From: Rebecca billardiae RCC1528
Lineage: Eukaryota; Protista; Haptophyta
Length of the DNA stretch: 64,000 nt
NCBI GenBank assembly: GCA_965240325.2
Contig: OZ251227.1
Location: forward strand, 248,001-312,000
Reading direction: 5' to 3'
Position numbers and translations under genes: made by a program. The notes under the pieces were generated by a model. The model was not told where the DNA came from. It was given only the letters and a program-made list of their open reading frames with translations, and searched no databases. Of this stretch, positions 9,096 through 15,490 are shown one piece after another; positions within the stretch are counted from its first letter, which is position 1; every line of letters begins with the position of its first letter.

Positions 9096-9339
9096 ATATA
9101 ATACATAGTAGCTTAGCAATTATGCCGGCCGAAGCGGCGAATAACGTAGGCGTAGCGCATTGGATTCGTCAGTGGATCATCATCATCATATCATCGCAGT
9201 CATATGCATGACCTGATTACGTCACAGATCAGTACGACGCTACGAGTGACGAGATTGTGAAGCCTAGACGGTACTAGACGCCGGGCCCACCGGCCCAGTC
9301 GAAATCCCGATCCGCCGTGGCCGAGCGCCGACTTAGAAG

Positions 9340-11586
9340 CTACCGACGCCAAGCGCGAGCCCTTGGCGCGGGCGAATCGCGCCCGTTGGGAACGGCGAGG
9401 GCCACCGTCGGCGCACCGCCACCGCCGTGCAGATGATGTTGGAGGTGCGCAGCGCTCGCCGGCGTGTTGCCCGTCTTGCCACGGCTGCGCTGGCGGATGG
9501 GCGCGGGCGCTGCCGGCGTCGGCGAGGACGAGGTGCCCCCCGGCTCTGCGCAGTCGGCGAGCGCGTCCGCCTTGAGCCACTTGGCCACGCGCGGCACGGC
9601 CGCCGCCTCCGGCTCGGAGGGGGCACACATGGACGGAGACAGGGCCTCGCGTGGCGGCGCGCGCGCCGGCGCTGCTGCGGCAGCCCGGGGCGCGTGCGCG
9701 CCCGCCGGCGGCGTGTCTCTCGGGCTGTGCTGCTGGCTGGAGTAGGGGGAGCCCGACGCGCGCTCGCGCTCCGTGGACGCGGCCGAGGTGTGCCGCTGCT
9801 GGAGGGAGGGCGGCGCCGAGCTCGGCCCGCCGGCCGCGCCCACCTGGAGCATCGGCGCGCCCACAGCGACGCCCAGCCGCTGCAGCGCGTCGAGCAGGAA
9901 GGCGCGCGCGTGCAGGGTCACCGTCAGGTGGCCGATGATCGCGTCCGTGTCGTCGTACACGGCGAGGACCTCGGGCAGCTCCGGCTCGCCCGCGGTCACG
10001 CGCGCCGTCTGCTGCTTGAGGTTCACAAAGGCTTCGCCCACCCAGCGGCCGAGCCAGGTCGGGCTGCCGCCCTCCGACGGCGGCGCCGCGCGCGACTCGG
10101 CGGTGTGGCACTCGCGGATCGTGAAGACGAGGTCGGCGTACACCTCGGCCGGCGAGAAGAGCGACTCCCTGAGCAGCAGCAGCTCCTCCTCCGTCGTGAG
10201 CTCCACGTGGTGCGTGTCCCCAAACGAGGCGCACAGCATCCCTGCACCCATCCCGACCGCGGGCTGCAGCCGCTGCGCGCGCGTGTGCAGCGACGGCACC
10301 GCCGCGCCGAGCATTGACTCGTGGAAGTCGGTGCACACGGCGACGAGCTCGAGCGCGTGGTGCCGCGGCTGCAGCTCGAGCTGCCCCACCTCCACCACCA
10401 GTGGGCAGAGCGGGCCGGGCCGGAGCAGGCCGTGCGCGGACGGCGGGCGCGGCGGCGCGTGCTGCAGCGCCGGTGGCGTGGGGCGCGGCGGTGCCGGCGC
10501 GAGGGCGAGCTGCGAGTGCGGCGGAGGCATGCGCGCGCACTCCGCGCAGAACCCCGCGTGCGCGTGCGCCGCGTGCGGCGGAGCGCTCCACAGCGGCTGA
10601 CACACGTCCGCATCGCGCGCGCCCGCGCCCGGCCCCGTGGCCGCGTGCCTGAGCTCGAGCGGTGCCACGGTCCGAGGCAGCACCTCCGACTGGATCCGAC
10701 GGGCGGCGCTCGGCAGCGGCGGCGGGCGGCTGGCGGGCAGGCTCGTGGCAAGCCCGGGCCGCGTGTGCGCCGAGAGCGTCGCGCCCCACACCGAGGCCTG
10801 CCGCGTGATCCGCCTCGCGGCGAGGAAAGCGCGCGCCGCGCGCTGCAGCCGGCACGCGGCCGAGCCGTACGTGAGCAGGGGCCTGCACGGCGTGCTCGCG
10901 ACGACCCGCCGCCGGGCCAGCTGGCGCCTGGCCCGCGCTCGCGCGAGCCAGCCTCGCGCGAGGGCCTGCACGTGGACCGCCGCGCGCAAGGCGCGCGCAT
11001 GCGCCCGGCGCTGCCGCCGGCCGCCGCCCTGCTGCGGGTGTGAGCGCCGGGTGAGCAACGCGCTGGAGGAGGTACGCCCGAGCCAACGGGCCTGTATGCC
11101 GAAGCTCTGCGCGCTCGAAGTGGCGGGCTGCTCGGTCGGCCCCTCCCCCATCTCCTGCGGGGACGGCATCGAGTACGAATCCGTGCTGGGCGAGGTGAGC
11201 GTGTCCGCGGCCTCGCGCAGCGCAGGCGCGCGCGTTGCCAGCAGGCAGCGTGCGTTGGTAGAGCTCGACGCGAGCGACTTGGACAAAGACTGTGAAAGCG
11301 AGATCGATTGATCCGCCCCGTCTGCCGCGGACAGCGCGAGCGCCAGAGCGCTCTGCGCCAGAGCAGCCTTCTGCCCGTCCGGCCGCGACGCGAGCAGCGC
11401 GACAAAGCGCGCAAACGCGGACGCCTCGAGATCGTCCGCAAGCGGCAGCCGGGGCGAGCCAAGCGGGCTCACAACGCTCCCCGCAGAGCTGGGTGACGAC
11501 AACCCAAACGCCACAGGCGAGCTGAGCCCACTCGTCGCGCCGCGCGTGCCGCGACGGCGCTCGCGACGGGCGGCTGCGGTCGACAT
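9340..11586 (-). CDS. IQ-motif protein with RPGRIP1-C-terminal-like C2 domain
   Basis: Two IQ-like motifs (VHVQALARGWLAR, CRLQRAARAFLAAR). Beta-rich domain ending VGEAFVNL...VYDDTDAIIGHLTVTLHA resembles the RPGRIP1/RPGRIP1L C-terminal C2 fold. Confidence 0.6.
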   Translation of the reverse strand: MSTAAARRERRRGTRGATSGLSSPVAFGLSSPSSAGSVVSPLGSPRLPLADDLEASAFARFVALLASRPDGQKAALAQSALALALSAADGADQSISLSQSLSKSLASSSTNARCLLATRAPALREAADTLTSPSTDSYSMPSPQEMGEGPTEQPATSSAQSFGIQARWLGRTSSSALLTRRSHPQQGGGRRQRRAHARALRAAVHVQALARGWLARARARRQLARRRVVASTPCRPLLTYGSAACRLQRAARAFLAARRITRQASVWGATLSAHTRPGLATSLPASRPPPLPSAARRIQSEVLPRTVAPLELRHAATGPGAGARDADVCQPLWSAPPHAAHAHAGFCAECARMPPPHSQLALAPAPPRPTPPALQHAPPRPPSAHGLLRPGPLCPLVVEVGQLELQPRHHALELVAVCTDFHESMLGAAVPSLHTRAQRLQPAVGMGAGMLCASFGDTHHVELTTEEELLLLRESLFSPAEVYADLVFTIRECHTAESRAAPPSEGGSPTWLGRWVGEAFVNLKQQTARVTAGEPELPEVLAVYDDTDAIIGHLTVTLHARAFLLDALQRLGVAVGAPMLQVGAAGGPSSAPPSLQQRHTSAASTERERASGSPYSSQQHSPRDTPPAGAHAPRAAAAAPARAPPREALSPSMCAPSEPEAAAVPRVAKWLKADALADCAEPGGTSSSPTPAAPAPIRQRSRGKTGNTPASAAHLQHHLHGGGGAPTVALAVPNGRDSPAPRARAWRR

Positions 11587-11979
11587 GCGCTCCTCGTCCT
11601 CGCGCCTGATTTGGACGATTTGGACTGCTGATTCGCCCGCGCGGCCGGCGCTTCAACTTCGCACTCTCGTCACTCGCGCTCACCGCTCACGCGCTCTCAG
11701 TTGGCCAGTTTGCCACTCCTGGCTTTGGTGGGCAGATCTACAGCCCTGCTGTGAGCAACCACTGGCCCGGCCCGAAGCCCGAAATTGAAAATGCGGGTGG
11801 GCAAGCCCGATTCCGGCCGCGATTCAGATTCGTCATGGAACGACGGACGATGTCTCGTCGCCTTCCCGGAATTCGTCGCGTCGAAGACTGCGCGAAAAGG
11901 CGCGGGAACTGGGAACCGGGAAACTGCGAACCGGCCGGAGGGGATTCGGGATGTCCGTCTCGCGGATCGCGCTCTCCCG

Positions 11980-14499
11980 TCACACGCGCACGCGCAGCAT
12001 GCACTCGTCCGCCATCTCGGCTAGCCGCGTCGCCTCGAGCGCGTAGTTGTGCGAGCGGAACGTCCACGGTCGCGCCGGGTCCTGCGCGGCCTTGTCAAAG
12101 CTCGCCGCCTCAAAGTAGTGGTACGGCACGCGCAGCGCGGCCTTCTCCCCGCGCTTCCCGCCGAGCGCTGCCGGGCGCGTCGGCTGTGCGCGCAGGTCCG
12201 CCTCGTCGATGTAGAACCCGTACACGTCGACGGCCTCGCACGCGTACAGCGCGTGCACCACCGCCTCGAACCCGAACGTGGCGGTGAGGTTGGTGCGCGT
12301 CGCCCTGCGGTGCTCGTCAAGCTCGGCCGCGCTGAAGAGGCGCTGCACGCAGGTGCGGCGGAACGCGCGCGACAGGTGCGCGACGACCGTGCCCGTGTCT
12401 GGGAGCACGACGGCGGCCGGGGGCGAGGGCGGCGACGAAGACGGCGGCACGTCGCGAACGCGCGCCGCCCTCGCCACGCCTCCGACGCCACCCGCTGCGG
12501 CGGTCGTCCCCGCCGCCGGCGCGCCTCGCAGGAAGCGCGATGGCGTGCCCATCGTGAGCACGAGGGCCGCCTCTGTCACCTCGGCGGGCAGGGCCTGCCC
12601 CGCACGCAGGGCCGCCTGCCACGCGTGCGTCTGCGGCGAGTTGACCAGCCGCACGGTCGTGCGCCGGCCGACGTGCCGCGCGTACTGCGCGGTCGGCGCC
12701 GCGTTAAGACGCAGCACCGCGTCGTGCGCGTCGATCTCGTCGCCGAGGCGCGCGTGCAGCAGCACGCCCGACGAGCCGACGACGGCGCACGAGCGCCAGA
12801 GCGGCGCGCGCGCGGGCGCGGTGCCACCGCTGCCGCCGCCGCCGCCCGCCGCCGGCTGCTGCAGGGGGCTCGTGCCGCCCGGCGCGCGCCCGCCGAGTGC
12901 GAGCAGCTGGCTCAGGTTGGAGATGGCCGCGCACTCGGAGCGCGCGCTCGGCGCGAGGGCGCGCGCCGACAGCGGCGCGGGCGCGCGTGGGCGGGTGGCG
13001 CGGTCGGCGCAGCGCGCAGCCGTGGCGCCGGCGCGTGCTCGCGCGCCCAGCACGCCGCTGTCAGCGCGCACTTCTGCCACGGCCGCGGCGTGGCTCGGCG
13101 GCGCGGCTGCGCTCGGCCCGTCGAGCGCGCCGCCCACAGCTGCCGCCTCATGCGCGTGCGGCGCAAGCTCTAGAGTTGCGCGGCGCGGCTGCGACGGCTC
13201 CGGCCCGACATCGGCGGGCAGCGCGCACGCGCGCACGCGGACGTGCAGCGGCAGGTGGTCGGACAGCGGGCGCACGACGGCCGCATCCGGGTCGACGTAC
13301 GGCCGCGCCGCCGGCCGCGCCGTCCACTGCGGCACGCGCGCCGCTGCCTGCGCGCCACGGGCGTACTCGGCGCACCCGCCGCCGCCGAGGGCGCACGCCC
13401 AGCCGTCGCTGCCTCCGCGGTCGTCCGCGCACCGCTCGGTGCCTGCACCTGCTCGCGGGGGTAGCAGCAGCGCATAGTCCAGCCGCATCGCCATCGAGTG
13501 CACAGCGTCAAGCTTCAACCCGCCACCGCCGCCGCCCGCGGCCGCGCCGTGCGCAGCAGGCGCGGGCGTGACGGTGCTCTGGCCTGTCGAGCTGTTCTGG
13601 GCGAGGTCGCGCCAGCCGAGCGCCGCGAGAGCGTCCGTCACGGCGTAGTCGAGCGCGGGCGGCCCGGCGTCCGACTCCCGCTCGCCCGCGGCCCTCGCCG
13701 CGCCGGCAGCCGCCTCTCCCGCGCCCGCGGTCGGCGTGGCCGCATGGCCGCGCACAAACTTGGCGCGCGCGCGCTTGTCCGCGCCGGGCTGCAGCAGCTG
13801 GGCCAGCAGCCCGTCCGCGACGTGTGCGGCCGCGTCGAGGCGCGAGAGGGCGTTCAGGTCGGCGAGGAGCAGCGTGCGACGCTCGCCCGCGCCGAGCTGG
13901 CTCTCCGCGTGCAGCCGCTCCGCCTCGCGCAGCCGCGCCGTGCGCGAGTGCGCGCTCAGGTGCGCCTCGCACACGCGCACGGCCGCGCGCCCAAGGTCCA
14001 CGCACAGCAGGCCGTGCGCGTACCCGTCCGTGCGCGAGACGGCACGGGCGATGGGCTCGCGCGCGATGAGCCCGAGATTAAAGCGGCCATCCGCCGAGCG
14101 CAGGTATTCGCTGTACGGGTAGCCGTGCGCCGCAGCGGCGCGCCCAAACTCGGACGCGCCGGGGCCGAGCTCGGCAAAGCCGACGACGTCGAAGCGGCGC
14201 CGCTCGAGGAACTCGCAGATCCTCGCCCAGCGCGGCGTGTCTGTCGACCCGAGCGCAATGTTCCAGTGAAGCACGCTCAGCTCGCGCTCGGCCGCGCCGA
14301 CCCGTGGCGCCACGTCGGTGTGCGCGTGCGCAGAAGCGAGCCGCTGATGTGCGGCGGGCAGCAAGCGCCGTGCGGCACGCCCGCCCTCGGCCGAAGCGCG
14401 GAGCGCTGCGTGCCAGCGCAGCGTGAGCGCGAGCACAGCCGCCGAGCCCAGCAGCCATGCGGCGTACGCGCGCCGCACGAGGCGGCGCCGACCACACAT
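11980..14499 (-). CDS. Type II membrane protein: EEP phosphoesterase domain fused to GT29 sialyltransferase domain
   Basis: N-terminal TM. EEP motifs VLHWNI, GFAE, AHL, ADLN, RLDY, SDHLP. Sialylmotif L CAVVGSSG...[12 protein letters not shown], motif S TFGF...CEAVDVYGF, motif III YHYFE, motif VS HNYALE. One uninterrupted ORF. Confidence 0.9.
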
Positions 14500-14661
14500 C
14501 TCGTTGCTCACCTACGCCTGGCCTCGGCGGCCGCCATCGTTCTCTCCGGGTGCAGCAAAGGCTTGCTTGCTGGTGATCAAGAGCGCGGGACGCAGGCCGT
14601 GCCCTCCCGCACTCCCGCAGTGCCCTCGGCGGTTGGCGGCTTGGCGCGCGTTCGGGGAGCC

Positions 14662-15490
14662 ATGGCGGACTCGAGTTCGTCGGAACCGCCGAGCGCGGAG
14701 CAGCTGCGCGAGCAGCGCATCCCGGCGATGCCCTTCATCGTGCGTGCGCCTGCGACGCTGTGCTCTCGTCCAGTCCGGCATGAGCCGTCGCCGCCACCAC
14801 CGGGCTCACCGCCGCGGCTGCGACCGCGCGCCTGCCTCGCGCGCAGGACGACATCGAGGCCTTCATGGACAAGGAGGGTCGCAGCGCCGAGTCCGCGCTG
14901 CAGAAGCTGCACGAGCGGTACAACGGGTACAAGATGTCCGACCAGCGATTGCTCGCGAGGAAAGTCAAGCTCAAGGTCAAGATCCCGGACATCGAGAAGA
15001 CGCTTGGCGTGGTGAAGCGGATGAAGCGCGCACAGGTCTGCGCTCGCTACGCTGGCTGAGGCCTCACGCGCGGCGCCGCTCGCGCGGCACAACGGCTCTG
15101 GTCGTCGGCTCGCTTTGAGACATGCGCGCCCACCCCGCACTGCGCGGCGCGCCACGCGCGCAGGACGAAGGGGAGGCCTCGCTGGGCACACACTACGAGC
15201 TGTCGGACGCGGTGTACGCCAAGGCCAACGTCCCGCTGGTGGAGGGGCAGACGGTGTGCCTCTGGCTCGGCGCGAACGTCATGCTTGAGTACACGGTGGA
15301 CGAGGCGATCGAGCTGCTCACCAAGAACCTCGCCACCGCGCAGGAGGCCCTCGCGGCCGTGATGAGCGACCTCGAGTACATCAAGGACCAGATGACGACC
15401 TCGGAGGTGAACATTGCGCGCGTGTACAACTGGGACGTCAGAGAGCGGCGGAAGAAGGAGCAGGCAGGGGGCGCGAAAGATGGCGAGTGA
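14662..15490 (+). CDS. PFDN3: Prefoldin subunit 3 (VBP1); exons 14662-14739, 14847-15035, 15164-15490
   Basis: KIPDIEKTL, YELSDAVYAKA, CLWLGANVMLEY, DQMTTSEVNIARVYNWDV. Two GT-AG introns give a continuous frame. Confidence 0.95.

Follow-up and report, generated by a model that had tools for sequence, protein, structure and literature searches.

The stretch of DNA analysed here (hereafter the window) spans 64,000 nucleotides, corresponding to positions 248,001-312,000 of the forward strand of contig OZ251227.1 from the haptophyte Rebecca billardiae RCC1528, whose genome assembly (G000) comprises 72 Mb in 41 contigs; coordinates below are window positions unless another contig is named. On the minus strand of the window, a coding sequence (11980..14499; 839 amino acids followed by a TGA stop) combines two Pfam domains, Exo_endo_phos (PF03372) and Glyco_transf_29 (PF00777), in one frame. 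The predicted protein begins with a basic cytoplasmic tail and a hydrophobic signal anchor (aa 1-29; 14413..14499, minus), continues with an EEP phosphoesterase domain (aa 75-421; 13237..14277, minus) and an Ala/Pro-rich linker (aa 422-515; 12955..13236, minus), which stands out by its composition and by its poor conservation in our alignments A1 and A3, and ends with a sialyltransferase module of the GT29 family (aa 516-839; 11983..12954, minus). Very probably, this order represents a real and conserved bifunctional architecture. An earlier note on the same DNA had described a single anchored protein in which a complete EEP domain precedes a complete GT29 domain, and we can corroborate this description from the single frame, the Pfam matches and the functional residues, with the anchor being recognized from hydropathy.

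The reading frame and the GT29 module

The minus-strand open reading frame (ORF) extends over 11980..14511 and begins at a GTG codon; its first ATG is at 14497-14499 and its TGA stop at 11980-11982. The G+C content of the region is 74-80% and long ORFs are present in all six frames, so the ORF by itself proves little. Two genes, or a gene containing introns, might then have been read as a single ORF because stops are rare at ~78% GC, and a relative on a low-coverage contig (L025, see below), whose pieces lie in three frames, could be taken to point the same way. We nevertheless regard such an artefact as very improbable, since the G+C content at third codon positions (GC3) equals or exceeds that at first and second positions (GC1 and GC2) along the fusion ORF, except in the Ala-rich linker (~aa 400-475), where GC1 is equal to or above GC3. 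In addition, at least ten independent sequences hold both domains in one uninterrupted frame, a stem motif around C523 (see below) and the ends of both domains align among relatives, and an anchor occurs at the N-terminus alone. The statement of the earlier note that the gene is intron-free is supported only indirectly, by the frame being open throughout, by the GC3 pattern and by relatives that align over both domains; in-frame introns might still lie in the low-complexity inserts (aa 250-275, 300-400 and 640-700).

The tail and the hydrophobic segment, recognized from the sequence and its hydropathy, conform to the type II pattern, and the same pattern was found in the full-length relatives P0005, P0009, P0011, P0153 and P0195. 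No comparable hydrophobic segment is apparent from hydropathy elsewhere in the fusion protein. Both the EEP domain and the GT29 module follow the single N-terminal anchor, hence both should face the lumen together. The fusion product is thus predicted to enter the secretory pathway as a type II membrane protein, with the Golgi as its probable location.

The GT29 module, delimited by Pfam, matches to PDB chains, alignment A3 and comparison with a single-domain paralogue, is recognized by PF00777 at aa 567-830 with a score of 92.7 bits (cut-off 23; E 3.5e-26), the match covering positions 53-268 of the 272 in the profile. The claim that all four sialylmotifs are present proved correct. Motif L (CAVVGSSG...RLVN), which aligns to ST6Gal1, occupies aa 571-620 (12640..12789), motif S aa 739-762 (12214..12285), motif III (PYHYF) aa 792-796 (12112..12126) and motif VS (HNYALE) aa 817-822 (12034..12051), all on the minus strand and the last three identified from the alignment and the sequence itself. 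The residues C571 (motif L), C754 (motif S), H817 and E822 (both motif VS) are invariant across nine fusion proteins, and solved chains of ST6Gal1, ST3Gal1 and ST8Sia3 match motif L with E-values from 1e-13 to 1e-7. At the start of the module lies a conserved stem motif, CxxxSxL around C523, which is common to it and a single-domain GT29 protein of the same genome. By its family membership the module would use a ulosonic acid activated with cytidine monophosphate (CMP), be it of the 3-deoxy-nonulosonic acid (Kdn), N-acetylneuraminic acid (Neu5Ac) or 3-deoxy-octulosonic acid (Kdo) type.

The EEP domain and its clade

The extent of the EEP domain was defined by Pfam, a family hidden Markov model (HMM), a table of catalytic residues, an AlphaFold model and structure searches. 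When the whole protein is scanned, PF03372 matches aa 78-268 (32 bits, E 1.3e-7; cut-off 24.5); the domain by itself scores 34.5 bits, and its relatives reach scores as high as 59.7 bits. The earlier note had listed a catalytic set of N, E, H, DxN, D and SDH, and every one of these residues could be located in the frame (N80, E110, H180, D214/N216, D341 and S413-D414-H415). They are invariant in the intact relatives wherever the region is covered, save for one group of relatives with SEH instead of SDH. The clade to which the domain belongs has a characteristic signature (WN, (N)E, HG.LC, VC.THL, R..E, GDLN.LS..D, K, D, RLDY, LSDH.P) and a specific helical insert after the DxN strand. Judging from these residues, the domain apparently functions as a metal-dependent phosphoesterase; the clade that it represents is uncharacterised.

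Searches for a subfamily name in NCBIfam, Pfam (with all 41 EEP sequences of the clade as queries) and the protein atlas returned at most a generic EEP label. NCBIfam yielded no match for the EEP domain of the window protein or for the fusion relatives, including none to TIGR00633 or TIGR00195, which represent nucleases of the ExoIII/APE1 type, and short relatives from the clade score 20-31 bits with the ExoIII/APE1 equivalog profiles, against cut-offs of 99 and 183. The predicted lumenal location argues against a DNA substrate of the domain.

A structural model of the domain was obtained with AlphaFold from 41 sequences of the clade (predicted local distance difference test score, pLDDT, 80.9), replacing a discarded earlier model based on four sequences (pLDDT 48.7). 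It adopts the EEP fold (Foldseek probability of 1.00 to ExoIII and APE1), and all 38 chains retrieved with it at Z>=8 share this fold. The best structural match is human neutral sphingomyelinase 1 (SMPD2; 8j2f), with Z 24.1 and a root-mean-square deviation of 2.8 A over 238 residues, followed at Z 22.6-21.8 by uncharacterised bacterial EEP proteins, nocturnin, ExoA and TDP2. The ranking by sequence profiles is headed by 3teb (E 1e-9) and SMPD2 (E 9e-9), with 4ruw (E 1.9e-7), ExoIII, APE1 and TDP2 coming next. By a small margin, the nearest characterised neighbour of the clade would thus be neutral sphingomyelinase, according to both the model and the sequence profiles.

The clade also shows a pattern of cysteines. 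The pair C166/C177 occurs in all nine fusion members of alignment A4 and in most of its anchored stand-alone members, whereas the unanchored relatives of ~260 aa in the same alignment lack it, with P0061 as the sole exception. In the model the two residues face each other on a beta-hairpin (domain strands 94-99 and 104-110). This pattern fits a disulphide bond that might form in an oxidising lumen.

Conservation of the fusion and its surroundings

Relatives were collected by an exhaustive HMMER search with a profile of the fusion, which returned 6368 matches; what we state about relatives concerns the top matches or cluster representatives. Word-index searches were swamped by Ala/Gly words and uninformative, yielding three relatives with the whole protein, none with the EEP alignment A2, and the query alone with the alignment A3 of nine fusions.

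The R. billardiae genome itself contains a second copy of the fusion on contig C1 (~2282698-2285010; L015:3699-6011, plus strand), with one open frame covering both halves. It is 33% identical to the window protein in the EEP half and 43% in the GT29 half, measures 771 aa from the first ATG, and has an anchor of its own, both Pfam domains and an intact catalytic set. Among the top matches, PF03372 and PF00777 both exceed their cut-offs in P0002, P0007, P0009, P0011, P0020, P0022 and P0023, and by family HMMs the two parts are detected together in 16 representatives of clusters (at most 50% identity), ten of which, including the window protein, retain every catalytic residue that their sequence covers. 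Apart from the paralogue, about a dozen sequences of uncultured algae thus share the design. Identity to the window protein is 33-43% among the nine best fusions, which keep all EEP catalytic and sialylmotif residues. Absence of the fusion from relatives, which the earlier note had named among the findings that would speak against it, is therefore contradicted by the paralogue and by many other sequences. All intact fusions other than those of this genome come from metagenome or Logan assemblies. The relatives examined at the DNA level have a single uninterrupted ORF on a multi-gene contig with 64-67% GC, except for L025. In this lagoon metagenome contig (7047-9162, plus strand) the EEP and GT29 pieces are collinear on one strand but fall in three frames and were called as three genes; with a coverage of ~0.6x, the split points to introns or to sequencing or frameshift errors.

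In a phylogenetic tree of GT29 sequences the window protein clusters with P0007 and the paralogue joins a different set, each within a separate supported subclade that includes sequences from other organisms. This indicates that the fusion is old and has been kept in both lines. The backbone of the tree is not resolved, and a single origin of the fusion is not shown by it; many of the seemingly single-domain GT29 sequences in the tree are fragments from contig ends (P0024, for instance, begins inside the SDH motif). A search of viral contigs found no relatives, and there is accordingly no sign of an origin from giant viruses.

Each of the two parts also exists separately in the same genome. 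A stand-alone anchored EEP protein of the same clade (P0010; 452 aa), in which all catalytic residues and the Cys pair are present, is encoded on contig C17 (L016:3147-4502, minus strand), and contig C1 encodes a classical single-domain GT29 protein of 409 aa from the same subclade as the GT29 module of the fusion; about 20 further GT29 loci are present. Other arrangements of GT29 modules were encountered in GC-rich algae: P0003 (1001 aa) combines an IPT/TIG domain with apparently two GT29 modules, and P0042 and P0052 have two CAVVG motifs each, which suggests tandem GT29 domains.

The fusion gene is flanked by a divergently oriented gene for a prefoldin subunit, whose last exon lies at 15122-15490 on the plus strand (PF02996, E 2.3e-20). 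The upstream exon or exons of this gene must sit in the ~600 bases that separate it from the fusion gene, hence any shared promoter region has to be short. Downstream of the fusion gene, at 9200-11683 on the minus strand, two candidate ORFs of 748 and 827 aa overlap each other in a stretch with 75-80% GC; a Pfam scan of both gave no match.

Possible roles of the pairing and known systems

Some insight into what the EEP clade may do comes from the modules to which its members are joined. A SASA-type carbohydrate esterase is joined to a clade-related EEP domain (L026:3255-5039, plus strand; GCA_040264055.1), and a sulfatase gene adjoins this gene on the short, apparently bacterial contig. Another clade member is fused to a ConA-like lectin domain, and a structure search of the ESM Atlas revealed one joined to NAGLU. 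In P0131 (1092 aa) and P0148 (832 aa) the EEP domain is followed by a region weakly resembling the C-terminus of GnT-V (GT18), its PF15024 scores of 25-26 bits being under the cut-off of 28 and its PDB match having an E-value of 0.02. These partners point to glycoconjugates, not nucleic acids, as the likely substrates of the clade. Glycoconjugate processing would be the first functional context for this large clade, which is found also in marine bacteria beside glycan-degrading genes.

The genome also encodes components from which a donor substrate could be provided. We identified a NeuB-type nonulosonate synthase with two exons (contig C5, 1184648-1185474, minus strand), two CTP_transf_3 genes of the CMP-Kdo or CMP-sialate synthetase type (C8, 1766120-1766791, minus strand, and C1, 518718-519248, plus strand) and many SLC35A-type transporters, which together make CMP-activated donors plausible. 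Kdn and Kdo are known from haptophytes and are suspected points of virus attachment.

The scenario that we favour, with a probability of roughly 0.4-0.45, is sequential processing of one acceptor. The anchor would place both domains in the lumen of the secretory pathway. There the EEP domain would first act on a glycan or lipid head group, removing a phosphate or cleaving a phosphodiester, and the product would then be capped with a CMP-activated ulosonic acid by the GT29 module. We infer the activity of each domain, the donor, the acceptor and the coupling of the two steps. The earlier note had envisaged a self-coupled enzyme whose EEP domain either destroys CMP or unmasks an acceptor; the latter version, itself still inferential, agrees better with the evidence, and we favour the former less. 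An acceptor is, to our knowledge, not known for any algal sialyltransferase, and the conserved tether to an intact phosphoesterase would be a testable clue, as the acceptor should carry a phosphate ester or derive from one. Kdn-9-phosphate (Kdn-9-P), which the earlier note had listed among the compounds to assay, is an unlikely substrate of the EEP domain on topological grounds, because in the known pathway its dephosphorylation takes place in the cytosol and the EEP domain is predicted to be lumenal.

Hydrolysis by the EEP domain of CMP, or of another nucleotide, released from the GT29 reaction would relieve product inhibition. Some EEP enzymes do act on nucleotide phosphates, and nocturnin, ANGEL2 and PDE12 are close structural neighbours of the model (Z 20.5-22.3); the conserved physical linkage of the two domains would suit such a role, too. 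We nevertheless find it rather unlikely, given that this genome also encodes a separately anchored, stand-alone member of the same EEP clade, that the SASA esterase and lectin partners release no nucleotide, and that the GT18-like partners, if their weak matches are trusted, would release uridine diphosphate instead of CMP. Moreover, the Golgi antiporter that imports CMP-sialic acid uses lumenal CMP as its counter-substrate, and destruction of CMP would therefore be costly: this import would be starved, in a genome with many SLC35A-type transporters. Retention of the GT29 module beside a dead EEP domain in three relatives is a further argument against nucleotide clearance.

These three relatives (P0013, P0014 and P0015; ~810-840 aa) constitute one of several points that also weigh against acceptor processing. 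Their GT29 module is intact, while the EEP part lacks its C-terminal half and has replacements at catalytic residues (Asn for the metal-binding Glu, and Ala, Val or Glu for the Asp of DxN), which implies that the EEP chemistry is dispensable in some lineages. P0015 is the protein KAG8466402.1 (UniRef A0A8J6C9D7) of Diacronema lutheri (Pavlovales), annotated as a hypothetical protein; its GT29 part shares 54% identity with that of the C1 paralogue, its EEP part has E changed to N and GDxN to GExN and lacks the half with RxD and SDH, and Pfam reports GT29 alone. Of the remaining points, one is that the clade has no characterised member and that nucleases, nocturnin and TDP2 are structural neighbours within ~2 Z units. 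Another is that the argument from partner domains leans on more distant members of the clade, and finally, A109 and A213 of the window copy adjoin catalytic residues at positions occupied by N and G in most members.

The decayed EEP parts, which stay in front of an intact GT29 module, suggest that a structural role can suffice. The EEP domain could then be a lumenal enzyme working independently, or a stem or acceptor-binding module devoid of catalytic activity, that has nothing but the anchor in common with the sialyltransferase and is not chemically coupled to it. The single-domain GT29 and the stand-alone EEP protein of the same genome imply that each part can work alone, and a fixed interface is not suggested by the linker, which is long and poorly conserved. 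Two observations argue against this explanation: ten cluster representatives, at 33-43% identity, have strictly retained the catalytic residues, and the fusion persists in a pair of old paralogues within the same genome. We thus consider it unlikely, yet far from negligible.

The most unusual reading that we consider is an exchange of sphingolipid head groups. The sphingomyelinase-like EEP domain would cleave the phospho-head group of a lumenal sphingophospholipid and the tethered GT29 module would sialylate the freed ceramide or glycosylceramide with a residue of the Kdn type. Though quite improbable in our estimation, this exchange would, if true, produce sialic-acid glycosphingolipids like those of Emiliania huxleyi and bear on the host-virus lipid markers used in studies of ocean blooms. 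The E. huxleyi glycosphingolipids, with a head group described as sialic acid, mark virus-susceptible strains (PMC10318983). The papers that we consulted name no biosynthetic enzyme for these lipids.

A full-text search of the literature combining sialyltransferase with the EEP name, or both Pfam accessions, yielded nothing relevant on the fusion. A term search of a 2023 review of GT29 enzymes likewise retrieved nothing relevant on it, and the text of the paper on Kdn in Prymnesium contains no mention of sialyltransferase or GT29. The assertion of the earlier note that no example had been described holds in so far as no paper on the fusion turned up, and has to be amended in that NCBI and UniProt already contain the unnamed D. 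lutheri protein, in which the EEP part has decayed. From its sequence, the fusion is an unusual pairing and a new two-enzyme architecture built of known kinds of enzymes, a GT29 sialyltransferase and a member of an uncharacterised EEP clade, with putative chemistry.

Compared with known systems, the GT29 module follows its eukaryotic counterparts (ST6Gal1, 4js1/6qvs; ST3Gal1, 2wnb) in the type II pattern, the motifs L, S, III and VS, the His and Glu of motif VS and the cysteines of motifs L and S, with the sequence similarity to the animal enzymes residing mainly in motif L. It differs from them by ~500 additional residues with a second catalytic domain in front of the GT29 module. Groups of 'protist' GT29 sequences, including those of haptophytes and pelagophytes, were surveyed by Petit et al. 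2018 (PMC5811610), and a term search of the text of that study found no mention of an EEP-GT29 fusion. The D. lutheri protein has the same order of anchor, EEP part, linker and GT29 module as the window protein, differing by the decay of its EEP part.

For the EEP domain, the lipid head-group phosphodiesterases SMPD2 (8j2f) and bacterial sphingomyelinase C have the same layout of E, H, DxN and D-H residues. SMPD2 is 18% identical to the modelled domain, its profile match spans the N-terminal half, and its lead over uncharacterised EEP proteins, nocturnin, ExoIII and TDP2 amounts to 1.5-2 Z units. Unlike SMPD2, the fusion EEP has the clade-specific helical insert and the Cys pair, and the C-terminal membrane helices of SMPD2 and ISC1 have no equivalent after the EEP domain, judging from hydropathy, the anchor of the fusion being N-terminal and its domains predicted to be lumenal. 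The structural-genomics proteins 3teb, 4ruw, 3g6s and 3l1w, themselves uncharacterised, are structural matches near the top of the ranking (Z 20.8-22.6); in contrast to the anchored fusion, they are bacterial, soluble and single-domain.

Two catalytic domains facing the lumen on one type II polypeptide are familiar from NDST, a deacetylase and sulfotransferase, and from LARGE with its two transferases, in both of which the domains act sequentially on one acceptor. We know of no such Golgi enzyme that pairs an EEP-fold phosphoesterase with a GT29 module. By analogy with NDST and LARGE, with which it shares the presence of two catalytic domains on one type II chain, the fusion may be viewed as adding a new type to the two-enzyme proteins of the Golgi.

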